From IMG/VR virus record IMGVR_UViG_3300046694_000136, positions 124,001 through 188,000 of that record: 64,000 nucleotides of DNA, one strand, 5' to 3'. Positions 328-34,764 of the stretch are shown here, piece after piece (the first letter of the stretch is position 1; each line of letters starts with the position of its first letter). The notes under the pieces are model-generated. The model was not told where the DNA came from, did no database searches, and worked only from the letters and a program-made list of their open reading frames with translations. The translations under genes were made by a program, and so were the position numbers.

Positions 328-1662
328 ATGTCGAAATCCCATCTTGACTACCTGATGATGGTATCTGGTACTGAAAGCCTGAACGGTGGCGACACTGGCG
401 GCGAGAACATCGATACCGGCGCTGGCAACCTGGGCGGCGGTAACACCGACACCAGCAACATCGAAGCCGTCATCGAAGAAGCACGCGCCGATACCGCCGA
501 AGCTCAGGTTGTTGTTGAGCAAGCGGCACAAGCAGCTGAAGCTGCTGCTGAAGTCCTGGAACAACACGAAGAAGTTCTGCAAGAACTGACCGAAGAAGTG
601 GCCGGCGTTGAATCGATGCGCACTGGCGCTACCACCTTCAACGGCATCGCGTTCGCCGATCGCTACAACCGCTGCGTTAAGCTGAACGCCCAACTGGGTG
701 GCCGCAACTTCAACCTGTGCGGCGCTGAATCCCTGAACGACCTGGCCACTGCCAAGCTGTTCGCTGTTGCTGGTGTCGAAGGCTTCATGGACACCATCAA
801 GGCCGGCGCAAGCAAGGCGATCGAGTTCATCAAGGGCATCTTCAACTCCATGATCAACTTCTTCGTTGGTCTGAAGTCCACCGCCGACGGCCTGGAGCGT
901 CAAGCCAAAACCCTCGCGACCACCATCGCCGAGAAAGCGCCGAAGTCGACCATTAAACTGGGCGCCTGGAACATCGGTTGCGACTACGCCAACGCTGGCC
1001 TGAAAGGCATCGACGGCATCCTGCACGCCGGTGTGTTCGACCTGATCTCCAGCTCCCTGCCAGCCTTCATGGACCTGAGCAAGAAACTGGACGGCATCGA
1101 CGTAGGTCAGTTCCGCACTGCCTACAAGAAAGTGACCGACGACATCAAGGAACTGGCCAAGGCTGCTGGTAAGCCAAACGTCAGCCAGACTGCCGACAAG
1201 ACTTCGGTCCTGATGGTTCACGCTGGCTTCCGCGTCTTCGCTGCTTTCAGCGAGAAGTTCGAAACCGAAGCTGAAGCTGTTTCCGCTGCTCGTTCGATCA
1301 AACTGACCTTCGGCAAAACCGACGACGCCGGCAAGTTCACCAAGGGCGAAACCGAGCTCAAGGCAAGCAAGGGTCAGCTGCAAAGCACTCTGAAAGGCGT
1401 GCACGATTACGTGGCCGAGCTGCGCGACAGCAAAGTTGCTGCCAAGTTCTCGAAAGCTGAACGTGACCGCGTCATCGGCACCCTGAACGTCCAGATCAAA
1501 GGCGACCACAGCGAAAGCGACGGCAAGCGTGATCAGGCGAAGAAAGCAATCGAGCTGTGCAAAGCGATCTACGTGTCGGCCTCCGGCCTGACTTCGTCCG
1601 TCGACCGCCTGTACATCTACCTGGCCAACCAGATCCTGGGCGCTGTTAAAGCTCACTTCTGA
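328..1662 (+). CDS. Abundant internal head (inner-body/ejection) protein, phiKZ gp93-like paralogue family
   Basis: AGGA RBS, strong C-ending codon bias, acidic N-terminal propeptide, and several G-x-E maturation sites (VSGTES, VAGVES, LCGAES, VAGVEG). Confidence 0.75.
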   Translation: MSKSHLDYLMMVSGTESLNGGDTGGENIDTGAGNLGGGNTDTSNIEAVIEEARADTAEAQVVVEQAAQAAEAAAEVLEQHEEVLQELTEEVAGVESMRTGATTFNGIAFADRYNRCVKLNAQLGGRNFNLCGAESLNDLATAKLFAVAGVEGFMDTIKAGASKAIEFIKGIFNSMINFFVGLKSTADGLERQAKTLATTIAEKAPKSTIKLGAWNIGCDYANAGLKGIDGILHAGVFDLISSSLPAFMDLSKKLDGIDVGQFRTAYKKVTDDIKELAKAAGKPNVSQTADKTSVLMVHAGFRVFAAFSEKFETEAEAVSAARSIKLTFGKTDDAGKFTKGETELKASKGQLQSTLKGVHDYVAELRDSKVAAKFSKAERDRVIGTLNVQIKGDHSESDGKRDQAKKAIELCKAIYVSASGLTSSVDRLYIYLANQILGAVKAHF

Positions 1663-1682
1663 TTGCCATCGGTGCGTTGAAC

Positions 1683-1716
1683 CTAACCCGCCTGCCCTAA
1701 CCGGCAGGCGGGTTAG
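1683..1716 (+). terminator. Stem-loop terminator
   Basis: CTAACCCGCCTGCC-ctaacc-GGCAGGCGGGTTAG followed by a T-rich tract. Confidence 0.85.
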
Positions 1717-1778
1717 TCTTCTTTCTATTTGCATTTTGATGCTATGTGCTAATTATCCACTCGATAGGTAACTCACAC

Positions 1779-2810
1779 ATGAACGGACAAAGTGTGGCTC
1801 CTTTACGGTATATCGTTACCCCGACTCTGAAAGATATTTCTGATCAGGACCGGGAAGAATTCGAAGCCGCTGAAGCACAGCCGGTAATGGCAGAACTCTC
1901 TGCCGAGAACGATCAGGTAAGCGGTACTGAAAAGTACTACAACTACATCCTCCACTCGCAAGCTCTGGTTTCCGCTGAGCTGGGTAGTGTCACCGGTGCT
2001 GAGGGTCTGCTGGGTTCTCTGAAGCGCGGTGCTGGTCGGATCATCCAGATTGTTAAGGACTTCTTTAAATGGATCTGGAGTTTCTTCTCCGCCAAAGAAA
2101 AGAAGATCGACCACAAGTTGCAGTACGTTGATTCCCGTCTTCGTGATAAGGGGGTCAAGGCAGGTGAGGTTTATTACCCACAAGCCACTTACTACATCTA
2201 CCCGAAAACAGGTCCCGGTAAACCAGCAGGTGACCTAGGTTGGGTGAGTGAGACCAACAAGCGTATTGCCAAAGGCATCACCAATGCCAACAGCTACGCT
2301 ACTTTGTTGACCGAACATTTGAACTTGCTGGAGAAGATGGCTAAAGACCGTAAGCCAGTCAGCGAGATGGTTGCTGCTACCACTGCCTATTCGGGCAAGG
2401 TGCGTGCACTGTTCGGTGCACCCACCAACAAAGATAAGGCGACGTTCATCACTCAGGATGACTTCCGCTTTGGTGCTACCAAGATTGCTTACCACCCAAC
2501 CAGTAATCGTCGGACTGATTTCCATATCAGTACCTTTACGACGACAGTTACGACTGTGGAAGAAATCCGTAAGGATACCGCTGCTAACTTGGCGCTGGTG
2601 AAGAAGATGACAGTTGACCTGCATAAGCTCGAGAAGGAAATGGTTGATACCTTGACCTTCCTTAAGAACAGCAAGGATCTCGGTAATGGGGTCCACAAGG
2701 TCTTCGCGTCTATCATTAATAACAGCCTCGATGATATTCGTACTTTCGAGAACGTACTGTATCGAGCGCTTAACACGATCGGCGACCTGTGCAAGGCGGC
2801 CGTTAACTAA
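1779..2810 (+). CDS. Internal head protein paralogue (proteolytically processed)
   Basis: ATG 1779 with AGGT RBS is preferred over GTG 1746. It has VSGTEK and VTGAEG sites, then the amphipathic 'IIQIVKDFFKWIWSFF' helix also seen in the 328 protein. Confidence 0.7.
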   Translation: MNGQSVAPLRYIVTPTLKDISDQDREEFEAAEAQPVMAELSAENDQVSGTEKYYNYILHSQALVSAELGSVTGAEGLLGSLKRGAGRIIQIVKDFFKWIWSFFSAKEKKIDHKLQYVDSRLRDKGVKAGEVYYPQATYYIYPKTGPGKPAGDLGWVSETNKRIAKGITNANSYATLLTEHLNLLEKMAKDRKPVSEMVAATTAYSGKVRALFGAPTNKDKATFITQDDFRFGATKIAYHPTSNRRTDFHISTFTTTVTTVEEIRKDTAANLALVKKMTVDLHKLEKEMVDTLTFLKNSKDLGNGVHKVFASIINNSLDDIRTFENVLYRALNTIGDLCKAAVN

Positions 2811-2821
2811 GGAGAAGGTCT

Positions 2822-3319
2822 ATGCGGCTTAATCTGGTAAACCTTCCCTCGCTTATAGGGGCAGGGCTTTCTACTATCGCATGTGAGAGCTTTAACCCCA
2901 AGTTTGGTAACAAGGTAGCTATTAACGAAGATCTCTTCAAATACGTGCTTCCAGGCCCTCCTAAAGAGGTGTTTGTGTTTGAACGGGTTTCTTTGAACGA
3001 ACTGTTCGAGGGTAATCCTCAGTCCATCGTTGGGATTGTTCGTCGTGACTGGTCGGAGCCTACCCCTTTTGAGATCATTGATTTCCTGGGTACTCCGCTT
3101 ACCACTCAGGAAGGTCCGGTAGAAGCACTGGATCCAGAAGACGAAAGCGCTGACCTCGTAACCAAGCAGTTCAACCTGTGGGTTCAGTACATCGGTCTGG
3201 GTGGGTTGTACCGCGCTGACGTTGACCTGACCACCACTGAAGGCTGGTTGCACGTGGACGCTCGCCGCTCCGCTGTCTTCAAAGGTAGCGTCTCTATTAA
3301 AGTCCAGGAGGTAGAATGA
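2822..3319 (+). CDS. Hypothetical/virion protein
   Basis: AGGAG RBS; lies in the head operon; overlaps the next gene (ATGA). Confidence 0.7.
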   Translation: MRLNLVNLPSLIGAGLSTIACESFNPKFGNKVAINEDLFKYVLPGPPKEVFVFERVSLNELFEGNPQSIVGIVRRDWSEPTPFEIIDFLGTPLTTQEGPVEALDPEDESADLVTKQFNLWVQYIGLGGLYRADVDLTTTEGWLHVDARRSAVFKGSVSIKVQEVE

Positions 3320-15560: not shown

Positions 15561-15615
15561 TGCAGTTTAATACCGCATTAACTTGCATAAATCACTTTCT
15601 CGACAGGAATGTATC

Positions 15616-17811
15616 ATGGACAAAGAAAATTTCAAGAAGGTTACGGCGAGTGTTGATAAGTCGCCGAACTACTTCCACAACACCCGCCAAGCTCTGACCA
15701 ACGGTAACCTTGCCTCGGTAAGCGGCAACGAAAGCTACACCGAATTCCAAAAGGCCCTGGACTCTGTTGACGGCTCCGAGTCGCTCAAAGTCAAGCAGAT
15801 GTTCACCGGCTTCAACCAGAACAACTTCGACGCGATCAAAAGCGCCTGGGGCAAGGACATCGTCGCACGCGCCAAGAGCGTTATCGATGGTTACGACGCC
15901 GACGGTCAGAAATTCGCCGCGGTCGCTGGTCAGGAAGGCTTCTCCCTCCAGAACTTTGGTGGCGACGAGCAATCGATCCGCGCAGCCAACCTGGTACTGA
16001 ACGCCCAGTCCCACCTGCAAACCAAAGGCGCTGATGCCCTGTACGCTCCGATTTCGATCGGCTACAAGGAAGAAGGCGTTGAAATGACCGTTCGTGCCGC
16101 CGGCCTGGGTACCTATACCTACGGTGCTACCGCGTTCCAATCCGCTTCCGATCTGCGTCCGGTCTTCGGCCTGCTGCGTTCCGGCGACATGTTCCAGGAA
16201 GAAGTCCTCGCTGTGTACCCTGTGTACCCTGCTGACGACGCTGCTGACGAACGCCGCTTCTTCGCTCCTGCTGCACTGTCCACTCCAGTCCCTGTCAAGT
16301 ACATGGCTGGCGATGCCTACGGCCGTCAGGAACACCTGACCCAGGACTTGGTTGTTCCGGTAACCATCCCGAACTTCCTGGCCCTGACCCAGACCCCTGG
16401 TCAACAGCCGTGGACCAACACCGACGAACTGGAGTCCAACTCCATCGCGGTCAAGCGCATCGGCGTGAAAGTCATGATCGGTTCGACCGAGAAGACCTTC
16501 TTCATCAACACTGCTTCGATGTCGAACAACACCTTCGGCGTCGGTGGTCAGGTACAGAGCTCCGACGAGCGTACTCTGAACCTGAAAATCTCCCAGTACC
16601 CAGGTTTCTCGGTACAGGACAAAGACGGCAACGAAATTGGCGAGACCATCTTCGCCGACTTCAAAGCCGCCGGTTACGAGCCACGCCTTCAGCTGCAACT
16701 GACTGGTACCTACCAGCGTCAGCGCGGTGACATCACCCTGCTCGCAGGTGCGGTGAACATCGCTGAGCTGTACGAGACCAGCACCAAGGTTGTCGTCAAG
16801 TACGGCAAAGCTTCGAGCCAGCAGCAAGGTCTGTTCAACACCCTGAAGTCGGGTACCGTGGTTTCCGCCCGTACCGGCCAGAACGTCAACAACACCAACC
16901 GTGGCAACTTCGGTTACCGCGTAGAAGTGTACGATGCCTACAAGCATCTGTCCGTTCAGCGCCGTTCGCCGATCTCGGTTCAGTACCCAGTGAGCGACAA
17001 GGACGTGTACCAGGAATCTCTGGACTTCGCCCTCAAGCAAATGTCGATCATCATCAACAACCAGTGCTCCAAGACTGCGTTCGTTGAAGCGCGTCGTCAC
17101 ACCGAGTACATCAAGCAGATCGACGGTTCCGCTGTTGTTGCCAACACCCAGGGCTCCGAAGTTCTGGCTGGTCAGCACTTCCTCACTCCAACCTGCGTTG
17201 ATCGCAAGCTGAAGCTGAGCGACGTGGTTTCGGCCAACGGTTCGTACGACGTCTGGAACGCAGTGTCCGCTGCGATCACCAACGAAATCGCCGACATCAT
17301 CGCTGCGCTGTACACCCGTTCGGGCCTGGCGGCTGTTGCCGAGTACACCACCGGTGATCTGAAAGGCAAATGGTCGGTTGTTGCTCACCAGAACATCAGC
17401 CGCTTCATCTTCCGTTCGGGCGACGCTCGTACTGTTGGTCCGGTTGATCAAGCCAACGTTGTTGAAACCAACTTCGACTCGGAAATCGGTTACGTCACCA
17501 TCGTACCGAAGAACGATTCGTCGTCGGAAGTCATCGACCCGCTGGCTGGTATCGGCGTCGTTGTGACCAAAGAGAACATTGTCGTACAAGGCAACGTGAC
17601 TCGTGGCAACAAAGACTTCGGCGTTGTTATGACGCTGCCGACCTACAAGCACTGGGGCCTGAACGTGGTCATCGGTCGTCTGTTCATCGAAGACGCCCAT
17701 CTGTTCCTGACCGACGACGGCTTGATCAACGACCTGGCTGTTAAAGCAGTTCGTCTGGCCAACGCCAACGAGATCGTGCTGACTCCGGTCGTTGACCCAA
17801 ACGCACCGTGA
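15616..17811 (+). CDS. Major capsid protein (phiKZ gp120-like)
   Basis: About 731 aa from ATG 15616 (AGGA RBS), strongest codon bias in the window, propeptide with VSGNES/VDGSES/VAGQEG sites, and helicase-gp119-MCP-x-RNAP synteny. Confidence 0.9.
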   Translation: MDKENFKKVTASVDKSPNYFHNTRQALTNGNLASVSGNESYTEFQKALDSVDGSESLKVKQMFTGFNQNNFDAIKSAWGKDIVARAKSVIDGYDADGQKFAAVAGQEGFSLQNFGGDEQSIRAANLVLNAQSHLQTKGADALYAPISIGYKEEGVEMTVRAAGLGTYTYGATAFQSASDLRPVFGLLRSGDMFQEEVLAVYPVYPADDAADERRFFAPAALSTPVPVKYMAGDAYGRQEHLTQDLVVPVTIPNFLALTQTPGQQPWTNTDELESNSIAVKRIGVKVMIGSTEKTFFINTASMSNNTFGVGGQVQSSDERTLNLKISQYPGFSVQDKDGNEIGETIFADFKAAGYEPRLQLQLTGTYQRQRGDITLLAGAVNIAELYETSTKVVVKYGKASSQQQGLFNTLKSGTVVSARTGQNVNNTNRGNFGYRVEVYDAYKHLSVQRRSPISVQYPVSDKDVYQESLDFALKQMSIIINNQCSKTAFVEARRHTEYIKQIDGSAVVANTQGSEVLAGQHFLTPTCVDRKLKLSDVVSANGSYDVWNAVSAAITNEIADIIAALYTRSGLAAVAEYTTGDLKGKWSVVAHQNISRFIFRSGDARTVGPVDQANVVETNFDSEIGYVTIVPKNDSSSEVIDPLAGIGVVVTKENIVVQGNVTRGNKDFGVVMTLPTYKHWGLNVVIGRLFIEDAHLFLTDDGLINDLAVKAVRLANANEIVLTPVVDPNAP

Positions 17812-17861
17812 TCCCGCCGACGTTCTACGGGCAACTGACGTTTCCCGAGAATAGATCGTAA
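17796..17861 (+). other. Predicted -1 programmed ribosomal frameshift site (C CCA AAC) and 19-codon MCP extension
   Basis: In-frame X XXY YYZ heptamer at 17796-17802, two codons before the stop. The -1 frame reads RTVIPPTFYGQLTFPENRS to TAA 17859-17861, before the terminator. Confidence 0.65.
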
Positions 17862-17885
17862 GTAGGATCCTGTCCTGAAAAGTGG

Positions 17886-17922
17886 TAACCCTCCCCGACC
17901 TGCAATGGGTCGGGGAGGGTTA
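17886..17922 (+). terminator. MCP terminator
   Basis: TAACCCTCCCCGACC-tgcaatg-GGTCGGGGAGGGTTA followed by TTTATG. Confidence 0.85.
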
Positions 17923-17958
17923 TTTATGCAACTTAGAAATCCGCTAATTAAATTCAAA

Positions 17959-23955: not shown

Positions 23956-24516
23956 ATGGATCGCGCACTTCGCAACGTAAACGATGTGGCTGCCAATACA
24001 TCCAATAACCAATCGGGTTATCCCGAGTTGTCCAACGTCCAACTGGCTACTGAAGTCCAGAAGCTCAGCGGGTATAACCACTTCTCCAGTAGCACTGCTA
24101 GCTTGCTGGAAGAGGTGGTGCGTCGCCTGGTATGTAGTCAAGGTACCGTGATCAACCTTTCGGGAACTCCCAGTTCCTCCAGTTCTCTGGATCCGTTAGA
24201 CCAACCGGTGACCTTTGGTTCCACCCTCACCTTGAGGGATCTATCGGAAGCCACGTACACGGTTACCTTGGATCCACGTAAACACCTTAAGAAGTCTGAC
24301 TACCCCAGCCTGGCAAAACAGTTAAACAAGCAAGGACTTACTGATGATCTCGCAGAGCTTGCTTTGAGTGATTTGAAGAAATGCTACAACGTTACCGCTA
24401 TCGCCAAACAAGCGCCGGCTAGTTTCGATGTAATGTTTTATTGGTTGCAGAGCGGGGTTATGTACTGGACCTGGTGTGACGCTAAGGATCCAAAGAATAC
24501 CGCTGCTGATATTTAA
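23956..24516 (+). CDS. Hypothetical early protein with the shared N-terminal helical module
   Basis: ATG 23956 with GAGGA RBS. Confidence 0.75.
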   Translation: MDRALRNVNDVAANTSNNQSGYPELSNVQLATEVQKLSGYNHFSSSTASLLEEVVRRLVCSQGTVINLSGTPSSSSSLDPLDQPVTFGSTLTLRDLSEATYTVTLDPRKHLKKSDYPSLAKQLNKQGLTDDLAELALSDLKKCYNVTAIAKQAPASFDVMFYWLQSGVMYWTWCDAKDPKNTAADI

Positions 24517-24544
24517 GTTGCAGAATCCTTCAGATCTATATAAC
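24515..24544 (+). promoter_or_regulatory. Extended early promoter AAGTTGCAGA-N10-TCTATATAAC
   Basis: Nearly identical element with the same spacing at 61861-61890. Confidence 0.7.
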
Positions 24545-24605
24545 TAGGGTGAATATAAACGTGGTAGTTTTGCTACGTTCACCTTTATTGTACTGTAGGA
24601 GCTTT

Positions 24606-24950
24606 ATGATGACTAACCTTAACCTCACCCCAGAACAAATCAAAACTGTATCGATCCGTGGTCAACGCGAAGCCGGCTTCAAATCCTCCCACATCGTTGG
24701 TGCTGTTGCAGGTGTTCTCACTGCCGCCGCCAACTACAACCAAGGTAGCTCCCTCGCAGGCGCTGCCGCTGGTGCTGCACTGGGCGGCGCCATGGGTTAC
24801 GCCATCGGCGACATCTTCGGCATCACCGACGATCTGGGTACCAGTGCTCGCATCCTCAACGGCGGCGTAGCAACTCTGGTGGGTGTATCGTTCAGCGGTC
24901 TCGCGACTGGTCTGGTCGATGCACTGGTACGTCCACAAGAAGCACAGTAA
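24606..24950 (+). CDS. Small glycine-zipper membrane protein
   Basis: AGGAG RBS; three Gly/Ala-rich hydrophobic helices with GxxxG repeats; homologous to the C-terminal part of 61954..63279. Confidence 0.75.
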   Translation: MMTNLNLTPEQIKTVSIRGQREAGFKSSHIVGAVAGVLTAAANYNQGSSLAGAAAGAALGGAMGYAIGDIFGITDDLGTSARILNGGVATLVGVSFSGLATGLVDALVRPQEAQ

Positions 24951-24957
24951 ATGACAA

Positions 24958-24979
24958 TAGGGGGTCTTCGGACCCCCTA
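24958..24979 (+). terminator. UUCG-loop terminator
   Basis: TAGGGGGTC-TTCG-GACCCCCTA followed by CGGTTATGTTTT. Confidence 0.85.
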
Positions 24980-25048
24980 CGGTTATGTTTTATTTTTCAC
25001 CGTAATACCAATCACTCGAGCTACATTCTTAATTACGTAACTGAGGTA

Positions 25049-26014
25049 ATGACAATGCGCAATGAATTCGGACACATGCACGCCGCCCAATACATCCAAC
25101 CTGGTTATCAGGATGCGTTCAAAAGACTCAGCGATGAACAGTTGCTGGAGCAGCTGAAGTCCATGGCGTGTTACGGGGATCACAACCAAACCACCCTGAT
25201 GTTGATCGGGGAGCTTTACCAGCGCGCTCAGCGTGCTTTCGGTAAGACCTTCATGCCGAGTGAAAAGGTCCATGGCGATCGTTACCTGTACACCTCGATC
25301 TACAAGGATGGGGTAATGACCCATTACTTTGTGGACGATCATGAAACCAAGTTGCTGGTAGACGGTGTCTTCGAACGTACAGAGTTCCTGTACACAGCCG
25401 AGGGGCTGGGCTTCGAAGGGGGTCCTCGCATTAGCGCCTTGCTGGATCTTGGCGAGGTGTTCACAGCGATTCGGGTTGACGAGAACGGCAAGCAGGTTGG
25501 CGAAGCGGTACGTTGCCACTTCGGCACCATTGCAGCTGCTCAAGGGTTCAACGCTAACCCGTTGCACATCTCGAAAACTCTCCCTCTGGGGATCTTCGAG
25601 ATCAACTTCAAATCACCCGCCGGACTCATGCGTCAGACCCTCAACGAAGCTCTGCTGAAAGCGGCCGAGACGGTTACGACCGATCCAGAGAAGCTTACAC
25701 GAATTCAGGAATTTGTGAATCAGTTCGATCTCTTGGAAGAGTACAGGATCTCGGTTGAAAAGGTGTTCAATGGATCGGAGATGGCCGGTGGGATGAACCT
25801 TATCCCTATCACCACTCAGATTCATGTGTTCCCGGCTGGTACCGGCGCGCCTGTCAAGTTCTTGACTGCGATGTATGGTGAAACAGTTCCCGGGTTCGTT
25901 GACCGGAACAAATACCCTGCGTTGTTCCTCAACCCAGAACCTAACGCCAACCATTATGCTCCTGGTGCGGGCGGCTTTGGCGGTCCAGGTGGTCCAGGTA
26001 CCCCTATCTGGTAA
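25049..26014 (+). CDS. Hypothetical early protein (shared N-terminal module; Gly/Pro tail)
   Basis: GAGGT RBS; a promoter-like GCTACATTCT lies at 25020. Confidence 0.75.
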   Translation: MTMRNEFGHMHAAQYIQPGYQDAFKRLSDEQLLEQLKSMACYGDHNQTTLMLIGELYQRAQRAFGKTFMPSEKVHGDRYLYTSIYKDGVMTHYFVDDHETKLLVDGVFERTEFLYTAEGLGFEGGPRISALLDLGEVFTAIRVDENGKQVGEAVRCHFGTIAAAQGFNANPLHISKTLPLGIFEINFKSPAGLMRQTLNEALLKAAETVTTDPEKLTRIQEFVNQFDLLEEYRISVEKVFNGSEMAGGMNLIPITTQIHVFPAGTGAPVKFLTAMYGETVPGFVDRNKYPALFLNPEPNANHYAPGAGGFGGPGGPGTPIW

Positions 26015-26028
26015 GTAGTCTGATAGTC

Positions 26029-26050
26029 GAGAGGAGCTAACCCTCCTCTC
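26029..26050 (+). terminator. Terminator
   Basis: GAGAGGAG-ctaacc-CTCCTCTC plus a T tract. Confidence 0.75.
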
Positions 26051-26078
26051 CTTTCTTTATTCTTGTTATGAGGTTTTT

Positions 26079-26870
26079 ATGAACAACGGTCAAGGCAGTA
26101 TCTTCGGCGGGGCTCTTCACGGCATGCCTCAAACACAGCTCGAGTTCAACAAGCACTTTAACCCAGCTCCTCCGGAGGTGGTCATCCAGACCCTGCACGA
26201 GATGGCTAATTGGGTCCCTATGACCAATCAGACCCTCTCGGTTATTCAGAATGCTGTAGGGTTGATCTCCCGACTCCAGCAAGATAACAAGGCAATGTCT
26301 GACGATAAGTACTGGAAGCTTCGTAAGTTCGGTGAGGAGATGCTTGCTCTAATTTCCATCCCGGCTGACGCGGGTCGTGAAAAGCGAGTGTTCTTCCACG
26401 ATTTTGAGACCGGTGAAGTCTACCTGGGGTTCCCTGCCGTTATGGGCAAAGACATCCCGCCCATCGTAATGAAGGCAACACTGGGAGTGGAAGCAGTTGT
26501 AACCCTGTCCCTTAACGAAGCCGTCGAGGCAACCAAGAAGATCTGCAATACCTTTGAATCCTGGGTATACGGGACGGGCCGCTTGGGGCTCAATGAAGAA
26601 GTCCCGCTTAACCCATTGTCCGGAGAAACTGAGTTGGATTGGGAGTTCACCATGGACCTCGGTGACAGCCTGTTCGAGAATGATTTCAAGGCCAGCTTCA
26701 TCTTTCTCGGAGAGCAAGCCCATATCGTAAGGCCGGACTTGGAATACGATACGTTCAAGGACAAGTTCAACCTTTGCGCTATCCTGAACGGTCCTAACCG
26801 ATCGGTAATGCGTCTCCGGGTGTTCTCGATCAACCAGCAGCAGTACTACGAATGGGTATTCCCTAAGTAG
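26079..26870 (+). CDS. Hypothetical protein (shared N-terminal module)
   Basis: GAGGT RBS; 263 aa. Confidence 0.75.
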   Translation: MNNGQGSIFGGALHGMPQTQLEFNKHFNPAPPEVVIQTLHEMANWVPMTNQTLSVIQNAVGLISRLQQDNKAMSDDKYWKLRKFGEEMLALISIPADAGREKRVFFHDFETGEVYLGFPAVMGKDIPPIVMKATLGVEAVVTLSLNEAVEATKKICNTFESWVYGTGRLGLNEEVPLNPLSGETELDWEFTMDLGDSLFENDFKASFIFLGEQAHIVRPDLEYDTFKDKFNLCAILNGPNRSVMRLRVFSINQQQYYEWVFPK

Positions 26871-26880
26871 TTGTTACGAG

Positions 26881-26902
26881 GAGGGGTGTTAGTTCACCCC
26901 TC
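26881..26902 (+). terminator. Terminator
   Basis: GAGGGGTG-ttagtt-CACCCCTC followed by TTTTATTTTTT. Confidence 0.85.
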
Positions 26903-26935
26903 TTTTATTTTTTGTACCTCATGGAGTTTGTCAAG

Positions 26936-27241
26936 ATGGCTGTTAGCAGAGAACCTCCGCTTTTAATGAACAACTGTCAAATCAACCCTGAGTGGGAAAG
27001 ATGGTTAAAGGCTAATTACCCCAATATCTCCACTGAAGCGACTAATGCCAACATTATCCTCAAGATGCTTTGCTTTCGGGCTACCATCGACATTGTACTC
27101 AAGGATAACTGGGACCATTACTCAACAGAAACCTTGGGACTGATTAAGGAACATCCTGAACACTGGGGGTTATTGCAAACCATTAACCCGCCTAAACCCA
27201 CCATGTTACAGCGGTTATTCCGGCGCTTTAAACGGGAATAA
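26936..27241 (+). CDS. Hypothetical protein
   Basis: ATG 26936 after GGAG. Confidence 0.65.
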   Translation: MAVSREPPLLMNNCQINPEWERWLKANYPNISTEATNANIILKMLCFRATIDIVLKDNWDHYSTETLGLIKEHPEHWGLLQTINPPKPTMLQRLFRRFKRE

Positions 27242-27300
27242 ATAAACACTCCACCTAAATCCTATGCACGTTCATATAACCGAACTCTATGGAGTCTCCA

Positions 27301-27957
27301 ATGGCTAAAGGTAACAGCGGTAACAGCAAACCAAACACCACCGCACCGGCTCAAGCAGCCGTCCCTGAAAACAAAGGCGTTCAGGAAGGTGCTGACAACA
27401 ACGTCATCGACCAAAACAACACTGGTGATCAGGCCAACCTCGGTGATCAGTTCGTGGTTCCGGCGGGCAAGGTTCTTATCACTCTCCCGGCTGACGTGAA
27501 CGAAGGCATTACCGAGTTCGTGGGTCAGCTTAAAGCAGCTTACTTCGATGCTGACGTGGACGCCCTCCTGACCGATCGCTTCAAACCAGAAGTCGACGAG
27601 ACCATCAACGAAGACCGTGGGTCCGACGACATCGTTCTGGTTACTGGCTTCGAACTAGCTTTCCCGCTGGACGCTCTGGCCGACGACATCACCCAAGGCC
27701 TGCTGGCCGTACAAAACGCTCTGGACACCCGCAGCGCTCCCGAAGGCCAAACCTTCCCGGAAGCACTGGTCGGTTTCCAATTCCCACTGACCGTACTGGA
27801 ACGTTACATCCAAGGCGTCCTGCACCAAGGCGTCCGTCTGGAAGACGTGGAACTGGTTATCGCCGACGCAGAAGCAGACTCCCATCTGAAAACGCTGAAC
27901 TTCTCGCGTCTTCTGCAAGGTCTGGCGCCGACCCACGTTTACCTGCGCTTCCTGTAA
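27301..27957 (+). CDS. Acidic, highly expressed protein (probably virion-associated)
   Basis: GGAG RBS; MCP-like codon bias; TATG late motif at 27263. Confidence 0.65.
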   Translation: MAKGNSGNSKPNTTAPAQAAVPENKGVQEGADNNVIDQNNTGDQANLGDQFVVPAGKVLITLPADVNEGITEFVGQLKAAYFDADVDALLTDRFKPEVDETINEDRGSDDIVLVTGFELAFPLDALADDITQGLLAVQNALDTRSAPEGQTFPEALVGFQFPLTVLERYIQGVLHQGVRLEDVELVIADAEADSHLKTLNFSRLLQGLAPTHVYLRFL

Positions 27958-27976
27958 CGCGCGTACATAGTCATAG

Positions 27977-28007
27977 CCTACCCTCAGCCCTAAGGGCTGA
28001 GGGTAGG
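27977..28007. terminator. Bidirectional terminator
   Basis: CCTACCCTCAGCCC-taa-GGGCTGAGGGTAGG between convergent genes. Confidence 0.85.
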
Positions 28008-28031
28008 TACTATGGTTTTTTTTTGCTTCTG

Positions 28032-31000
28032 TTACGGTTTGAACGGCTGATATCCAGGATCGTTCTTACTAGGGTCCGTCCCATCTTTGTTGTCATCGTC
28101 CGCGCTAGCGTCCTTGTTAGCGTCGTCATCGTTAACAGGTGGTTCTTCGTCCTCTTCCTCTTCTTCCTCCTCACCGCCACCACCAGCTAGGGTGTCGTCG
28201 TCGACCAAAGCCGGATCATCAGTCAGAGCTGGATCTGCATCAGGATCAACAGGAGGGTTATCAATGCCATCACCGTTGGTCAGACTATCGTCAGGTTCTG
28301 CTTGGCCAGTGGTTTTATCCTTGGCTTGAAGCAGGTCTTGCTTAGACTTCTCGATATTCTTCCAATGCTTCTTGAGAACAGCCACGTCGGCCTTATCCAT
28401 ACCAACCATCATGGCAGCCAAGAACTCACCAGTGTTCTGGTGTTGCTGAACTACTTCGTTCACCAGAGACGCCAAGCCACCACCTTCACCACCCGCCAAT
28501 ACATCATCAAACGGCATTGGTAGGTTGTACTTGATGTAAGCCTGTCTGAGGAATACAGACTGGATCTGACCTTTCAGCTTAGCAAGGCTGTGCGGGTCAA
28601 TGTCTTCCTCAGGACTACCATCGTCGCCCTTAATGAAGCCCAGTAGTTTACCAACGTGAGACAACGTCCCGTTACCACCTGCCATGTCCATCCAGTTCTT
28701 AACCAGCTCATTAACCACCTGAAGGCTGTCTTTGATCTTGTTAGTGGTTTCAATACTGGTAGGAGTAGGAAGCTTGCAGATAACGTTACTGATGAAGTCA
28801 GCCAGAATTAGGTTGATCTGCTGTTGCTCGTTACCTTCCAATGTTTGACCACTGTCAGGTTTCCAAAGCTTCTTCTGTTCACGGATCTTGGCAATCAAGT
28901 CTTTCAGCAGCGGTGCGTTGACATACGCGTGCTTACGCTGGAAGTCAGCGAGGAACCCACCCAACTCAGCCTGATAGCTAACCACCTGGTTCAACAACAT
29001 CTGGTGCTCGGCCAAAGCCTCGATCTGGAAGTTGTTCTGATCGTCAGAGATATCCAGCCAGCTCTTTTGAAGTTGGAGGTAACTGGCGATCTTGTTCAAC
29101 AGTTCATTACGACTGTTTTGGTCAACCCCAGGGAAGTTGTTACGATCCATGTGGTCAATCTGAACATCGTGACCCGGGAAGTACGGGTTCTCACCCGGAT
29201 CTACCTTAACGGTCAACGACGCTTCCCGTAGGGAGTCAATCATCTGCGGAACAGACAACTGAGTCATCATCAGGATGTTGTGAACAGTCGGGTTAGCTTC
29301 AAAGAACGTGTTACGCGCGTTAGCGATGTCAGCCATCGGTTCAGGAGCGTTAGCGTTCAGACGAACAGTCATCATGGAGTGAGGGGTTGCCTTCTCCAAG
29401 TTAGACAGAGTGTCAGCCAAATCAAACATTGCCAGTCGAGTGATATGTGACTTCGCCATGTTCACCAAGGATTGACCGATGCCCAAGCGGTTGAAGTTCA
29501 ACGCCATGTAGGTGAGAGCCTCTCCAGGGATGTACAGACAACGAACGCCTTGACCACGGAACATGCGCTGCAAGAAGATCTTGTTGACCTCCTCGTCGAT
29601 CTCAATGCTGATGTTGTCACCATTACCACCCAACACCGACGCACTGAATGCACGGATAAGGTTAGCTTTAGAGACTTCAGCAAACTCACGCATGTCGAAA
29701 TCACATTCCTTACCTTCCTGCACCTTACGCAAGTTCTGGATAAGGCTGTTCATGCTACCGTTCTTAGCTGGAGCGCCTGACTTCTCCTTGTTAGCACCGA
29801 TCGACTGGTAGAACTCGAAGTCGTTGGTGTTCTTCAGGAAACTGCCATCTTCAGTATCCAGCAACGCGATGTAGTCAGGAGCAGTACGTCCATTACCGCC
29901 GTTGAAGTGGATAGGGATCAAACACTCACTCGGCAAGTGGAACGTCAGACCACGACCGTACGGAGCAGTATCCAGAGCACCGCTAGGCTTAACGTACTGA
30001 ATGAACTGCGACGCAATATTCCGGCTACGGAACATCTGGGCGCTGACTTGCTCGATCTGACCTTCGCTCAAGTTCTGAGTCTTAGGTGAGGACGCGGCAG
30101 TCTTACCCTTAGTGACGTTACCCTTCTGTCCACCGGCTGTGGTGTCTTTCTTTTCAGGTTTCTTCGGGGAGGTGTCTGCTTCTTCAGGTTTGTCTTTGAA
30201 AGACTCACCAATCAACAGATCCAAGCTCTCGAAACCAGAGACTTGCTTAACCCGTTCATCACGACGACCAGCACTGATCTTCTGAAGGAACAGAGCAGAA
30301 GGGTTATCCGTGAAAGTGATGTTGATCAGCTTCTCAGGGTCTTCTGCGTCACTGAACAGACGGAACTCGTCACCAGCATAGCTCGGACCTTTACCGAAGA
30401 TGCTTTCAATACCCGAAACCTGCTGATGGGACTCATGAGGGTTCTTAATGAAAGCGCCCTTGTTCTTCAGCAGAACTTTCTTATCGGTAGTGATTGTGAA
30501 CTCTTTGCTGAACTCTTCCTGAGCCTGACCGATGAAACTCTCAACACCAGCTACTCCTGCTTCCCGCAGTTGACTACCGTTGATCAGGTAATCCAGACCC
30601 GGGCGGCTCAAGTTAAACAGTGCGTAACTCCCCGTATTAATGAGAAGATCGCTCACTATTTTCTTCAAATCCCCCTCGATCTTATAGCCGTTAGTGTAAT
30701 AGGCGTCCCAGATGGCCACCAATTCCGTATGCAATTTTGCACTTTTGTATGGTGACGACTGGGTGTCATAACTGAGGATTTTGTCCTGCCGACCATTGGG
30801 GTACAGCAGCATTGTCTGCCAGATGGTTTCGGCTTTCCCGATGTACGGGGTGATGGCCCTGAGGTCAGTCGCGGCGTTGATGTTGTTGCTGATGATGCTA
30901 CTCAGCTTCTCCAACTTGAACTGACTGATCCCTTTATCGGATTTGCCGGTAAGCTCATCCCGTTCAGGAGTACGAGCGTTCTTAGGAACAGCGCGAGCCA

Positions 31001-31103
31001 GAGTGGAAGCCAACACGGGGTTTACAGTTTTCAGATCTGCCCGGATCCTGGACAGGTCAATGTTGCTATTGCCGATCGTCAGATCTTTTGTATGTCTATT
31101 CAC
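28032..31103 (-). CDS. Probable portal protein (phiKZ gp129-like) with a long acidic C-terminal tail
   Basis: About 1020 aa; GTG 31103 with GAAGGGG RBS (TTG 31127 is an alternative). Has VAGVES/VSGIES/VSGFES processing sites, so it is head-located. Divergent from a gp128-like gene. Assignment from recall. Confidence 0.6.
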   Translation of the reverse strand: MNRHTKDLTIGNSNIDLSRIRADLKTVNPVLASTLARAVPKNARTPERDELTGKSDKGISQFKLEKLSSIISNNINAATDLRAITPYIGKAETIWQTMLLYPNGRQDKILSYDTQSSPYKSAKLHTELVAIWDAYYTNGYKIEGDLKKIVSDLLINTGSYALFNLSRPGLDYLINGSQLREAGVAGVESFIGQAQEEFSKEFTITTDKKVLLKNKGAFIKNPHESHQQVSGIESIFGKGPSYAGDEFRLFSDAEDPEKLINITFTDNPSALFLQKISAGRRDERVKQVSGFESLDLLIGESFKDKPEEADTSPKKPEKKDTTAGGQKGNVTKGKTAASSPKTQNLSEGQIEQVSAQMFRSRNIASQFIQYVKPSGALDTAPYGRGLTFHLPSECLIPIHFNGGNGRTAPDYIALLDTEDGSFLKNTNDFEFYQSIGANKEKSGAPAKNGSMNSLIQNLRKVQEGKECDFDMREFAEVSKANLIRAFSASVLGGNGDNISIEIDEEVNKIFLQRMFRGQGVRCLYIPGEALTYMALNFNRLGIGQSLVNMAKSHITRLAMFDLADTLSNLEKATPHSMMTVRLNANAPEPMADIANARNTFFEANPTVHNILMMTQLSVPQMIDSLREASLTVKVDPGENPYFPGHDVQIDHMDRNNFPGVDQNSRNELLNKIASYLQLQKSWLDISDDQNNFQIEALAEHQMLLNQVVSYQAELGGFLADFQRKHAYVNAPLLKDLIAKIREQKKLWKPDSGQTLEGNEQQQINLILADFISNVICKLPTPTSIETTNKIKDSLQVVNELVKNWMDMAGGNGTLSHVGKLLGFIKGDDGSPEEDIDPHSLAKLKGQIQSVFLRQAYIKYNLPMPFDDVLAGGEGGGLASLVNEVVQQHQNTGEFLAAMMVGMDKADVAVLKKHWKNIEKSKQDLLQAKDKTTGQAEPDDSLTNGDGIDNPPVDPDADPALTDDPALVDDDTLAGGGGEEEEEEEDEEPPVNDDDANKDASADDDNKDGTDPSKNDPGYQPFKP

Positions 31104-31129
31104 GACATTAAACCCCTTCGAGTCCAATT

Positions 31130-33406
31130 ATGGAAAATATTGAATTTGATGAATACGTAAGGGATACTCTAAGTTTAGTCCGGACCTTGGTTGTCAAGAT
31201 CGAGGCGGTAGCCCTTAGGGAAAACAGTGTCCTGGAAGCTGCTGGTTTTTTCGTCACTAATGACAAGAAGACCTGGCGGTACTATATGAACTTGAACGGG
31301 GACTATCACCCAACTGATGTGCCGATGTGGATTAACTCCATTGACACGGGTGAGGACATCCTCTTTGATAAAGCAAACATGGCTTTTCACATTGCCACGT
31401 TTCGGGAATACTCCAAAGGCGGGTACTGGTTTAAACGGATCAGCGACGCCTATCCAGGCCAAGTGGAACTGATCAAAGGGATCTTGAAACCGATCCCATA
31501 CGAAACAACCATACCGGCTGAGAACTATAAAATCCTGAGCTACAATAAAAACCTAGTACTGTGGAACGAGGATCACCTGATTCCCCACCTCCAGCAGTTC
31601 ATCTACGGTATTGTTCCTCAGTTGTTCAACCACGAATACATCTACACCGATAACCTGATGTTGCCGGTTACGGGGGTAATGACCCTCTACGAAGCAATCC
31701 TCATGGAAATCGGGACCGTTCGTCATGAGTCCATCGGGAGCCGTCATGCTCACGATTTCTACATCTGGGCTCGTGTGGATTCGTACGGTGAGTTCTCTAA
31801 GTACAAAGCCAGTCTGACCAAGACTCAGATCATGTGGATGTATGACAACATCTCATGGCTCGATAACAACCCAGGCGCGCAGTACGCTTTCAGCTTTATG
31901 CTGAAGAACTTGTTGTCCGATGCAGATATCCCGCTGGCTGAGTTCAGCATGGTGCAAAACACCAAGACTCAGCTGGTCGATCTGACACCTACCCCGCTGT
32001 ACCGTAAGCTCAACCTTAACCTGCAAGATAAGTACGGTCTGGAACCGTCCTATATCACCACGCAGCAGATGATCCTCAAAGAACAGGTGTTGGCTAAGGA
32101 TAACTACGACCAGTCTGCCATATGGAACGACCACGCCCTCAGGAAGGCTACTCAGAGTTTGCACTCAGAGCTTCCGACCAAGGTGCTGGAATCCAAAATG
32201 ATGGACTACACCAACCGGCACATCAACACGAAGATGTCGGTGACGTTCAACAACTGGATCTATCTGGCTGGTAAAGGTTACTACCAAGGCAAGATCTTGG
32301 TTCGTGACCCTAAGACTGGTAAAGACGTTCGTTTGGCAGTAGGGGATGCTTACCACATCTGGCGTCACTTGACCAACATTGCAGGCGGTCGGGAACAGAC
32401 GTACATCTGTGGCGCGTATTACCAAAACGTTATGAAAGCAGTTCCTCCGACATTGGATGAATTGATTCAGGTGGGTGGTAAGTATTTCATTCCGGTCTAC
32501 ATGGCCTTTGATATTCGTGCGTTGTGGGTTCCTCGTCAGATCTTCGTGTCTCCTGAGTTCTTGATGGAGCAGTCTGACGAAATCTATAACGTCATGTGGA
32601 AACACACAAAGCTGTACAGTCAGTTCTATGATCTCAACAAGCGCGCCAGAGTGCGTAACACCACGGAGTTGATGTACGAGTCAGGGTTTGTTGAACTGAC
32701 GACTGCAACCACCTACGAGGAGCTCCTAGACCGTTATGAGATGGATGTCAGCGACCATTCGCCAGAGGAAGCCCAATATTTCGCTTGGGAGATCTTCAAA
32801 CGAGTAACAGGTTGGGATACCAGCTCTAATCCGTCACTGCGTATTCGTCAAAACGCTTTGATTGATATCATGATGCAGTTGTCCTCTTACACGATCCAAG
32901 TCGTGAAGGAAATGGATGACGGTCAGGACATCACGGAACTCCCTAACGAGATGTTCGTAGGGGATCCCCGCTGGACGGGTCCGGGTAATGAATCGGATGC
33001 AGACTTCTCCAATGTGGGTATTGGGGAACCAACTCACATGGACACGACGTATGAGATGGATTACACCATCGCCTTACCACTGCCCGATGAGTTCAAGACC
33101 AACGCTGAAGCGGATATGCTTATTGAGATCCCTACAGTTGAAGGTATTGTTCCGGTCGACCTAGAACCAGACTTGATGTATTACGCTGTCCGCATTCCAG
33201 ACACGTCGTATATCAGACGTTTGCCAGACCCTATCCCAGATCTCCCTGAAACGGATTATGGGCGTTTGGTATGGCCTAAGCGGGAAGCCGGGAAGACTAT
33301 TCCGGAAACGGACTACGGTCGTCTACAGTGGCCGTCTCAGGAACCGACTGCCATTATCCCTGACACTGATTACGGTCGCCTAGCGTGGCCTGATGAGACA
33401 CCATGA
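31130..33406 (+). CDS. Virion structural protein (phiKZ gp128-like) with three C-terminal repeats
   Basis: 'TWRYYMNLNGDYH' N-terminal signature recalled from this family; 758 aa. Confidence 0.7.
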   Translation: MENIEFDEYVRDTLSLVRTLVVKIEAVALRENSVLEAAGFFVTNDKKTWRYYMNLNGDYHPTDVPMWINSIDTGEDILFDKANMAFHIATFREYSKGGYWFKRISDAYPGQVELIKGILKPIPYETTIPAENYKILSYNKNLVLWNEDHLIPHLQQFIYGIVPQLFNHEYIYTDNLMLPVTGVMTLYEAILMEIGTVRHESIGSRHAHDFYIWARVDSYGEFSKYKASLTKTQIMWMYDNISWLDNNPGAQYAFSFMLKNLLSDADIPLAEFSMVQNTKTQLVDLTPTPLYRKLNLNLQDKYGLEPSYITTQQMILKEQVLAKDNYDQSAIWNDHALRKATQSLHSELPTKVLESKMMDYTNRHINTKMSVTFNNWIYLAGKGYYQGKILVRDPKTGKDVRLAVGDAYHIWRHLTNIAGGREQTYICGAYYQNVMKAVPPTLDELIQVGGKYFIPVYMAFDIRALWVPRQIFVSPEFLMEQSDEIYNVMWKHTKLYSQFYDLNKRARVRNTTELMYESGFVELTTATTYEELLDRYEMDVSDHSPEEAQYFAWEIFKRVTGWDTSSNPSLRIRQNALIDIMMQLSSYTIQVVKEMDDGQDITELPNEMFVGDPRWTGPGNESDADFSNVGIGEPTHMDTTYEMDYTIALPLPDEFKTNAEADMLIEIPTVEGIVPVDLEPDLMYYAVRIPDTSYIRRLPDPIPDLPETDYGRLVWPKREAGKTIPETDYGRLQWPSQEPTAIIPDTDYGRLAWPDETP
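33242..33391 (+). repeat. 3 x 57-nt-period coding repeat, [IL]P[ED]TDYGRLxWP
   Basis: Units start at 33242, 33299 and 33356. The DNA has diverged synonymously while the peptide is conserved. Confidence 0.9.
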
Positions 33407-33804
33407 TGAGCAAAGCACTCGATTGGGTTAGACGTGATTACTGTAGGGTAAACAACATGCCGTTGAACCCGGCGTTGGTAGTCGTTCAATATGGAAGGGA
33501 TTCCAACGACGACTTCCAGTTTGGTGTTAGTGGACCCGGTTATCCAATGACTGGGTTTACCCTGCCACGTATCAGTCTTAAACCTTATACCAGCTTCGTC
33601 CCTTTAACTTTGGATCGAGAGTGGAAAGATAAACCCGACCAGCTCACCAAAGAAACCCTGTGCCGTTGGTTCAACAGCAAAACGGGGTTGGGATTAATCC
33701 CGGATGACATCGGTACCATCCTGACTAATCAGGAGCGAGTTACCATTGTTAGTTCGGTAAATTCTATGCGTTTTAAACACACCTTTTCCATGCGATTTAA
33801 ATAA
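33403..33804 (+). CDS. Small virion protein
   Basis: Coupled to the upstream gene; 133 aa. Confidence 0.65.
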   Translation: MMSKALDWVRRDYCRVNNMPLNPALVVVQYGRDSNDDFQFGVSGPGYPMTGFTLPRISLKPYTSFVPLTLDREWKDKPDQLTKETLCRWFNSKTGLGLIPDDIGTILTNQERVTIVSSVNSMRFKHTFSMRFK

Positions 33805-33816
33805 GGAATCTTTGTT

Positions 33817-34764
33817 ATGGGTCTCAGTGCCAACGATACAGCAGACTTGAACCGTTCCGAGATCCCTGCTCAGGCGGTCGCGAACACCTCGATCGGCTAT
33901 ACTCTCAACAAGTGCATCTCCACCGGTCAAGCCTTTACCGTTCCTCGCTGGACCACCTTGAATGAAAACTACAAGGTGTTGGCTGAAGAAAGTCTGGGTG
34001 AGAAGAACAGTCGTGACTTCTACCTCAAATACTTCGGCGTGGGTGTGCGTGGTTCCAACTGTGTAGGTCAAGACAGCCGTGGTGTTTCCAAATACCAGGT
34101 TAACCAACACCAGCCGATCGATGCCAACCTCTTCACGGCGATTCCGTTCATTGCTCGTCCGGAAACCGAAGACTTGGACAGCTTCAACCGCGCCAAGTAC
34201 CGGATGCGTACCACTGAAGAACGCAACGGCATCAACTACGTGTTCTATTGGCTGAAGCTGATCGACTTCTCCCGTTACAACCCACACGAAGTGGAAGTGT
34301 CTCGTGACCCGATCACCGGTGAAGAGAAGACCAACCCGTATACCCACACTGAAGACAACCTGAAGAACCCTCAACCGGTTCCGCTGACCAGCGAAGGGAC
34401 TGTACCTATCAGCGACGTCTACGTGAACAGTTCGGCTATCTTGGACTGCACACTGTACACCGCTGATTTGCGTGAGATGTCACTGGCATGCAAAATCTAT
34501 TACAACGACGCCAGTTACGCTTCGATCAACGAAGTGGGTGTGGCTTACGGTATCGACGTTGAACATCGTGGCGGTATCGGTGGTTCGGGTTCTATCCAGT
34601 ACACCGAAGTGGCCAGCGCTATCTTCGCTCACTACATCAGTGAACGTGATGGTCGTAACGCCCTGACCAACACCCGCATCAACGCCGCTCTCGACCACGG
34701 TGCCAGTGCTCCAATGCTGATCCATACCGTAGCGAACTCCTCGGCGATGGGTCAAGGTAACTAA
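33817..34764 (+). CDS. Conserved virion (baseplate/tail) protein
   Basis: AAGGA RBS; 'YFGVG...HQPIDANLF..IPFIARP' block typical of phiKZ-family structural proteins (recall). Confidence 0.65.
   Translation: MGLSANDTADLNRSEIPAQAVANTSIGYTLNKCISTGQAFTVPRWTTLNENYKVLAEESLGEKNSRDFYLKYFGVGVRGSNCVGQDSRGVSKYQVNQHQPIDANLFTAIPFIARPETEDLDSFNRAKYRMRTTEERNGINYVFYWLKLIDFSRYNPHEVEVSRDPITGEEKTNPYTHTEDNLKNPQPVPLTSEGTVPISDVYVNSSAILDCTLYTADLREMSLACKIYYNDASYASINEVGVAYGIDVEHRGGIGGSGSIQYTEVASAIFAHYISERDGRNALTNTRINAALDHGASAPMLIHTVANSSAMGQGN

Follow-up and report, generated by a model that had tools for sequence, protein, structure and literature searches.

A conserved predicted frameshift at the end of the capsid gene of an EL-like giant phage and its relatives may add a putative docking tag

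Introduction

In bacteriophages T7 and T3, a −1 ribosomal frameshift near the 3′ end of the major capsid gene (gene 10A/10B in T7, gene 10 in T3) gives a minor, C-terminally extended subunit that assembles alongside the major form (PMC5009743). The extensions comprise tens of residues, an Ig-like domain in T3, and the T7 heptamer, G_GUU_UUC, has a stimulator that involves a distant terminator sequence. Capsid gene recoding also yields two products in Lactobacillus phage A2 (gp5A/gp5B), where the second is reported as essential (Garcia et al. 2004, cited in PMC5009743), and in the Listeria phages A118, A500 and PSA; these are siphoviruses of Gram-positive hosts, the extensions are whole domains, and no shared tag on other virion proteins is known. 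The lambda G/GT-type tail assembly chaperones use a fixed-ratio −1 frameshift on G_GGA_AAG, conserved by position rather than by sequence across phages, but there the long form tethers a chaperone to the tape measure protein. Finally, the capsid protein gp120 of phiKZ uses its C-terminal arm, which lies at the center of the capsomer, as a docking site for the outer protein gp244 at pentons (PMC11297242), although phiKZ has no frameshift extension and its wedge protein gp128 carries no tags.

Here we analyze a 64,000-nucleotide stretch (the window) of the virus record IMGVR_UViG_3300046694_000136, from an EL-like giant phage. As in T7 and T3, the putative shift lies near the 3′ end of the major capsid gene, the heptamer lying 4 codons before the stop. 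The extension, however, is only 14–21 residues long in all the relatives, too short for a domain, and carries a linear motif that recurs on other proteins of the same phage, and a local hairpin follows the site. No description of this arrangement was found in literature searches on capsid frameshifts in jumbo phages or Chimalliviridae and in the RisingSun/Joad paper, and database records annotate the capsid gene as a single CDS.

Results

The capsid gene and its −1 frame extension

The major capsid gene was identified by sequence profiles and by an AF2 model (Table 1), and ends GTT GAC CCA AAC GCA CCG TGA. The heptamer C_CCA_AAC is in X_XXY_YYZ phase and is one of only two in-phase heptamers of this type in the 731 codons of the ORF; CCA is a minority Pro codon in it (6 of 24). 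The −1 ORF opens exactly at the heptamer, because a −1 frame TGA lies directly upstream, the overlap of the two frames being 13 nt before the stop. The −1 frame reads RTVIPPTFYGQLTFPENRS and encodes the tag IPPTFYGQLTFP, which resembles the three C-terminal repeats of the wedge protein, a homologue of phiKZ gp128, the role of the latter being taken from PMC13250141.

This resemblance is not due to chance. The pattern YG.L.[WFY]P occurs in the six-frame translation of the window only at these four places. A score matrix built from the three repeats alone gives the −1 peptide a score of 37, against 25.3 for the next best site in the window, and only 2 of 200 dinucleotide shuffles of the window reach 37 anywhere.

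Table 1. Features of the predicted frameshift cassette and of the tagged wedge protein in the window
Feature	Position (strand)	Support
Major capsid protein gene, 0 frame, 731 aa plus stop	15616–17811 (+)	PF25620 PhiKZ_MCP, E 1e-125; phrog_3231 major head protein; best fold matches of the AF2 model phiKZ gp120 (8y6v, E 7e-34) and phiKp24
Slippery heptamer C_CCA_AAC	17796–17802 (+)	Conserved, or replaced by another slippery heptamer, in the relatives examined
−1 frame extension, 19 codons plus stop (17859–17861)	17802–17861 (+)	Predicted trans-frame product of 748 aa, the last two 0-frame residues being replaced by 19
0-frame stop codon, two codons after the heptamer	17809–17811 (+)	0–3 codons after the heptamer in relatives
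Extended hairpin starting 7 nt after the heptamer, candidate frameshift stimulator	17810–17869 (+)	dG −21.7 kcal/mol, z −2.4; consensus with three close relatives of 21 pairs, 4 with compensatory changes
Tag IPPTFYGQLTFP within the extension	17811–17846 (+)	Y, G and L invariant in 31 distinct relatives, with free third codon positions
Perfect 16-bp hairpin followed by a T-rich run, terminator-like	17886–17922 (+)	Fold of 17796–17925, z −5.2; not flagged by a simple terminator scan
Baseplate wedge protein, phiKZ gp128 homologue, 758 aa	31130–33406 (+)	phrog_3222; PDB 9xqs_C PHIKZ128, E 4e-67
Three tandem C-terminal tags [IL]P[ED]TDYGRLxWP	33242–33391 (+): 33242–33277, 33299–33334, 33356–33391	Homologues in relatives carry 0–4 such tags

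Conservation of the cassette in relatives

The capsid 3′ ends of 38 distinct relatives, including those of the cultured phages EL and RisingSun, were compared. They keep in the −1 frame a peptide of the form [ILV]-[PSA]-x-[TA]-x-Y-G-x-L, although one tag, in the relative designated L119, has Leu in place of the otherwise invariant Tyr. Among the loci first collected, all 35 with a complete capsid 3′ end (31 distinct motif sequences) have YGxL in the −1 frame. Entropy is 0 at positions 1 and 2 of the Gly codon but 1.76 bits at position 3, the third position of the Leu codon has 1.99 bits, and position −5 is always I, L or V. The Tyr codon lies 14, 17, 20, 23 or 26 nt from the capsid stop, always in the same frame. 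This indicates protein-coding selection on the −1 frame.

Different heptamers interchange at the homologous site, namely C_CCA_AAC/T/A, A_AAC_CCG/A/T, G_GGA_AAG (in L119, the heptamer of the lambda G/GT-type site), G_GGA_AAC and G_GGA_AAA, while four relatives carry A_ACC_CCG, which fits the slippery pattern only at the A site. At least six different heptamers serve at one site, which sequence-pattern predictors trained on tail-chaperone genes would miss. In nine sequences the only stretch where the frames can be joined is 10–13 nt, consisting of the heptamer plus one or two codons, and in 30 of the 38 distinct sequences the −1 ORF has no ATG, GTG or TTG before the tag. None of 82 capsid protein clusters, searched for a natural in-frame fusion, carries the tag in frame. 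More distant relatives (Miami and the relative L123) lack both heptamer and tag together.

All 31 sequences that were folded have a 53–81 nt hairpin starting 0–9 nt after the slip site, mostly at 2–9 nt, with dG from −19 to −44 and z from −1.1 to −7.6. Stem sequences differ between clades, and compensatory changes occur within clades. The hairpin of the window is the weakest of the set (z about −2.4, and −1.2 in a fixed 83-nt fold). Rfam and tRNA scans were negative.

The tag recurs on the wedge protein and on a gp147-like family

Whole-genome six-frame scans of EL and RisingSun find the tag only in the capsid −1 frame, in the wedge protein and in a third carrier, the EL gp147-like family, apart from one out-of-frame match in EL and one looser match in RisingSun, at the rate chance predicts. 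A scan for P[ED]TDYGRL in viral contigs returned only the carriers already known plus unrelated hits. The tag is carried in tandem by the wedge protein and singly by the gp147-like family, always within about 60 residues of a C-terminus. Pfam found nothing in the gp147 family, and the AF2 model of EL gp147, meant to show whether its tag docks on its own domain, was too poor to use (pLDDT 59.7, with the tail below 50).

Tag variants co-vary within genomes, as judged by a qualitative comparison. TYYG appears in both the capsid and wedge tags of one set of genomes (group 2), and T[DN]YG plus x[WFY]P in several genomes of another (group 1), the capsid tag of the window itself (TFYG) excepted. In the window phage, IPPT-x-Y-x-QL appears in both the capsid tag and the gp147-like tag, although the latter has Lys in place of the invariant Gly. 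One genome (L027/L089) has the capsid tag but no wedge tag.

The sequence-level expectations of the original prediction, namely a heptamer and a −1 frame motif retained in relatives and a motif shared with the gp128-like virion protein, were all borne out, but several details had to be corrected. The short stems it named (CCCG at 17813 with CGGG at 17828) are not the ones supported, the candidate stimulatory structure being a long hairpin, and the doubled GACGTT is a direct repeat and not a stem. The gap to the terminator-like hairpin is 74 nt, instead of 75 nt. The conserved core is also shorter than the proposed [IL]PxTxYGxLx[WF]P, as the trailing [WFY]-P is specific to one subclade.

Discussion

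The most likely explanation, to which we give a probability of roughly 0.7, is that the capsid mRNA carries a programmed −1 ribosomal frameshift cassette at its 3′ end. Most ribosomes would terminate and make the 731-aa capsid protein, whereas a fraction would slip back one base on C_CCA_AAC (tRNA-Pro from CCA to CCC, tRNA-Asn from AAC to AAA) and add 19 residues containing the tag. The cassette, the selection on the −1 frame and the shared, co-varying tag rest on comparative sequence analysis; that the trans-frame protein is made and assembled is inferred, and no protein-level evidence exists, the published mass spectrometry of a RisingSun lysate reporting only annotated gene products and never mentioning a frameshift (PMC6034870). 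The rate could be low, as A_AAC is probably a poor A-site slip codon in E. coli. By homology with phiKZ gp120, the tag would hang on the C-terminal arm at the center of a capsomer. The last ~30 capsid residues have low AF2 confidence (pLDDT 42–63), which may reflect flexibility but is not proof of disorder. We infer that the tag is a short linear docking motif for one common, co-evolving partner, not yet identified, dosed on the capsid by the frameshift rate. EL and RisingSun are cultured, nucleus-forming jumbo phages, and EL has been studied for two decades; an unannotated second capsid product would change their virion parts list. Recoding would here dose a short linear motif rather than a domain, and the network formed by capsid, wedge and gp147 family may explain how peripheral virion parts, or the orphan phage chaperonin, are wired together.

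Readings in which the frameshift is real but the tag has a different role are less likely. The tag might be a recognition peptide for the Cpn60-type chaperonin of the phage (EL gp146-like), to which tagged wedge and capsid chains would be recruited, the gp147-like protein using the same peptide as a GroES-mobile-loop-like cofactor. A chaperonin gene lies directly upstream of the tag-bearing gp147-like gene in six genomes, including the window phage, and the EL chaperonin has no known co-chaperone, does not use E. coli GroES and showed no encapsulating state (PMC7185714); T-x-[YW]-G-x-L may also resemble a GroEL apical-domain binding peptide, which is a lead only. However, although the tag-positive genomes examined have a chaperonin, so do Miami, Vibrio-type and OBP phages, which, without any of their genomes having been scanned in full, showed no tag at the capsid 3′ end (Miami) or on the wedge proteins (Miami-like, Vibrio-type and OBP). 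A folding tag would be expected on every capsid subunit and not on a frameshift fraction. In RisingSun the carriers sit 9–18 kb downstream of the chaperonin, inside a tail-fibre-like cluster, and these genomes are broadly collinear, so gene adjacency is weak evidence. This reading is unlikely. An outward-displayed tag acting as a weak adhesion peptide for a host-surface or environmental ligand is more doubtful still. Ig-like domains are added to capsid proteins by frameshifting in other phages (PMC5009743), and the carriers include peripheral proteins in a tail-fibre and carbohydrate-binding gene cluster. However, a nine-residue peptide is an unlikely carbohydrate binder, and a core that is invariant across phages of Pseudomonas, Erwinia and unknown soil hosts, with flanking positions that co-vary within each genome, fits a phage-encoded partner better.

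Explanations without recoding are very unlikely. The conserved stretch could be an RNA element of the capsid 3′ UTR, such as a stabilizing hairpin or part of the terminator, given that a strong hairpin covers the region in every relative and that part of the motif (CTACGG) pairs within the stems. Against this, variation has a three-base periodicity, the frame relative to the capsid ORF is kept across five spacing classes, slippery heptamers interchange, the same amino-acid motif occurs and co-varies in unlinked genes, a separate terminator-like hairpin follows, and no Rfam family matches. The tag could also be made as a free micro-protein by reinitiation after capsid termination, since a GTG overlaps the TGA stop (GTGA) in the window, in EL and in the relatives L001 and L015, but the lack of a start codon in most relatives makes this improbable, the conserved upstream feature being the heptamer. 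Transcriptional slippage was rejected, as the A3 and C3 runs are too short.

A more speculative and improbable reading is that a single nine-residue C-terminal "address label" links the capsid shell, the baseplate wedge and the small protein family encoded next to the chaperonin to one receptor. In the boldest form, this receptor would be the orphan phage chaperonin, with gp147 as its missing cofactor. Alternatively, the tagged isoform could be the penton-specific capsid subunit, which would represent about 3% of the subunits in a T=27 shell, a typical frameshift rate.

The capsid gene and its -1 frame

The major capsid protein (MCP) ORF was identified by its match to the Pfam family PhiKZ_MCP (E 1e-125) and to phrog_3231, and its AF2 model matches phiKZ gp120 (8y6v, E 7e-34, TM 0.71) and phiKp24. 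The window comes from IMG/VR contig 3300046694_000136 (234.5 kb), which belongs to an EL-like jumbo phage without a close cultured relative, the MCP sharing 68% nucleotide identity with that of EL. The gene ends GTT GAC CCA AAC GCA CCG TGA, with the heptamer C_CCA_AAC in X_XXY_YYZ phase. This is one of only two in-phase heptamers in the 731 codons, and CCA is a minority Pro codon. The -1 frame opens exactly at the heptamer, because a -1 frame TGA lies directly upstream, and it then reads 19 codons containing IPPTFYGQLTFP up to its stop, giving a predicted trans-frame product of 748 aa. A 758-aa protein encoded further along the window ends with three copies of [IL]P[ED]TDYGRLxWP.

Within the window alone, the resemblance between the -1 peptide and these repeats is moderately significant. 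A score matrix made from the three repeats only gives the -1 peptide 37, against 25.3 for the next best site, and only 2 of 200 shuffles reach 37 anywhere. The decisive evidence comes from the comparison with relatives. A 702-aa open reading frame antisense to the capsid gene is most likely a by-product of the codon bias of the gene.

Coordinates of the features described in the window and in related sequences
Feature	Sequence	Coordinates	Strand
Major capsid protein ORF	window	15616-17811	
Heptamer C_CCA_AAC	window	17796-17802	
Stop of the -1 frame	window	17859-17861	
Extended hairpin	window	17810-17869	
Separate perfect hairpin, terminator-like	window	17886-17922	
Open reading frame antisense to the capsid gene	window	15592-17700	-
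Large virion protein (phrog_3004, EL gp103-like)	window	28032-31127	-
Wedge protein ORF (phiKZ gp128 homologue)	window	31130-33406	+
Chaperonin gene and gp147-like gene	L136 (same contig as the window, outside it)	758-3109	
Paralogous virion proteins gp196, gp198-200, gp202-204	L083 (RisingSun)	24022-33901	
End of RNase H gp112	RisingSun NC_042018	120986-121003	
G_GGA_AAG heptamer and tag with Leu for Tyr	L119 (relative)	2770-2850	

Comparative analysis of the capsid gene 3' ends

MCP 3' ends were collected from viral and metagenome contigs, from public assemblies, and from the cultured phages EL and RisingSun, which gave 38 distinct sequences, down to about 54% protein identity. All 38 carry the tag in the -1 frame. 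Thirty-seven of them have Y-G-x-L, whereas the relative L119 has Leu in place of Tyr (NLGEL). Among 31 distinct motif sequences, Tyr, Gly and Leu are invariant, while the third codon positions of Gly and Leu have 1.76 and 1.99 bits of entropy, respectively, and the residue five positions before Tyr is always I, L or V. The Tyr codon lies 14, 17, 20, 23 or 26 nt from the MCP stop, so every length change is a multiple of three.

Different heptamers interchange at this one site: C_CCA_AAC (13 sequences), C_CCA_AAT, C_CCA_AAA, A_AAC_CCG/A/T (16), G_GGA_AAG (the classical heptamer, used by L119), G_GGA_AAC and G_GGA_AAA, whereas four sequences have A_ACC_CCG, which is slippery only at the A site. 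In nine sequences, the region where the two frames can be joined is just 10-13 nt, consisting of the heptamer plus one or two codons. In 30 of the 38 sequences the -1 ORF has no ATG, GTG or TTG before the tag, so independent initiation cannot be the conserved route. None of 82 MCP protein clusters has the tag in frame; all of them stop right after PN(A)(P), NP, KP, GN or KG. More distant relatives, namely Klebsiella phage Miami and the sequence L123, lack both heptamer and tag.

Each of 31 distinct sequences folds into a 53-81 nt extended hairpin, which starts 0-9 nt after the slip site, mostly 2-9 nt (27 of 31), with a stability ranging from dG -19 to -44 kcal/mol and z-scores from -1.1 to -7.6 against dinucleotide shuffles. 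The stems are built from different sequences in different clades, but compensatory changes are found within clades: 4 of 21 pairs in the subclade of the window, and a C-G to T-A exchange in the group of relatives L024/L058. The hairpin of the window is the weakest of the set (z -2.4), and it explains why GGATCC downstream of the -1 stop is invariant among close relatives. The separate perfect hairpin that follows looks like the terminator. No Rfam family matches the region.

Other proteins carrying the tag

The 758-aa protein is the homologue of phiKZ gp128 (PDB 9xqs_C, E 4e-67), which in the phiKZ structural atlas is the baseplate wedge protein that forms a heterotrimer with two copies of gp87 (PMC13250141). 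Its gene and that of the large virion protein are divergent, and their longest possible ORFs start only 2 nt apart, although the true start of the minus-strand gene is probably further in. A six-frame scan of the whole EL genome finds the tag in three places: the wedge protein gp104, with three copies; gp147, a 209-aa protein encoded directly after the chaperonin gp146; and the MCP -1 frame. The same generic pattern also gave one out-of-frame match in EL. The whole RisingSun genome gives the MCP -1 frame, the wedge protein gp89, and gp197, gp205 and gp206, the last three of which belong to the gp147 family and lie in a tail-fibre-like gene cluster. The RisingSun RNase H ends in TDTDYGYLK, which resembles the tag but lacks the [ILV]-P prefix; about one such match is expected by chance in that genome, and EL RNase H has none. 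In the tail-fibre-like gene cluster of RisingSun, a family of paralogous virion proteins ends in a different conserved C-terminal motif, roughly [WYF]-x-P-V-[FLY]-E-L, which may be a second C-terminal tag system.

All metagenomic gp147 homologues also end in the tag. In the window phage and in the genome L137, the gp147-like tag reads IPPTNYKQL, with Lys in place of the otherwise invariant Gly. In contrast, phiKZ gp128, OBP_133 and the Vibrio-type wedge proteins have no tags. The genome IMGVR_UViG_3300009011_000002 (L027/L089) keeps the capsid -1 tag but its wedge protein stops before any tag, and the wedge copies are therefore dispensable in at least one lineage.

Tags in unlinked genes of one genome share their variant. 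TYYG appears in both the MCP and wedge tags of group 2 genomes, T[DN]YG followed by x[WFY]P appears in both in several group 1 genomes, and IPPT-x-Y-x-QL appears in both the MCP tag and the gp147-like tag of the window phage. This pattern is what a common, co-evolving binding partner would produce.

Proposed mechanism and function

On the basis of this comparative sequence evidence, we conclude that the arrangement is probably a programmed -1 ribosomal frameshift that makes a minor, tagged MCP isoform. The last ~30 MCP residues have low AF2 confidence. In phiKZ, the C-terminal arms form a six-helix bundle around a pore at the center of each hexamer, and in pentons they swing out and bind the outer protein gp244 (PMC11297242). 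By homology, we infer that the extension would emerge at capsomer centers.

The tag is best read as a docking peptide, for a partner that is not identified. The main functional rival is recognition by the phage chaperonin, as a Cpn60-family gene lies directly upstream of the gp147-like gene, on the same strand, in six genomes (L134 to L139), including the window phage, and the EL chaperonin has no known cofactor. However, relatives that encode a chaperonin showed no tag on the capsid end or wedge proteins examined, which argues against this possibility.

Capsid-gene frameshifts are known in T7, T3, A2, A118, A500 and PSA (PMC5009743). The present case differs in that it occurs in jumbo, nucleus-forming phages, in that the extension is a 14-21 residue linear motif rather than a domain, and in that the same motif is shared with, and co-varies with, other proteins of the phage. 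We found no previous description of it, and database records annotate the MCP as a single CDS. The deposited record of Pseudomonas phage vB_PQ1 (PQ516283) splits the capsid gene into six CDS, which suggests assembly frameshift errors, but it still holds the EL-type heptamer and the tag in the -1 frame.
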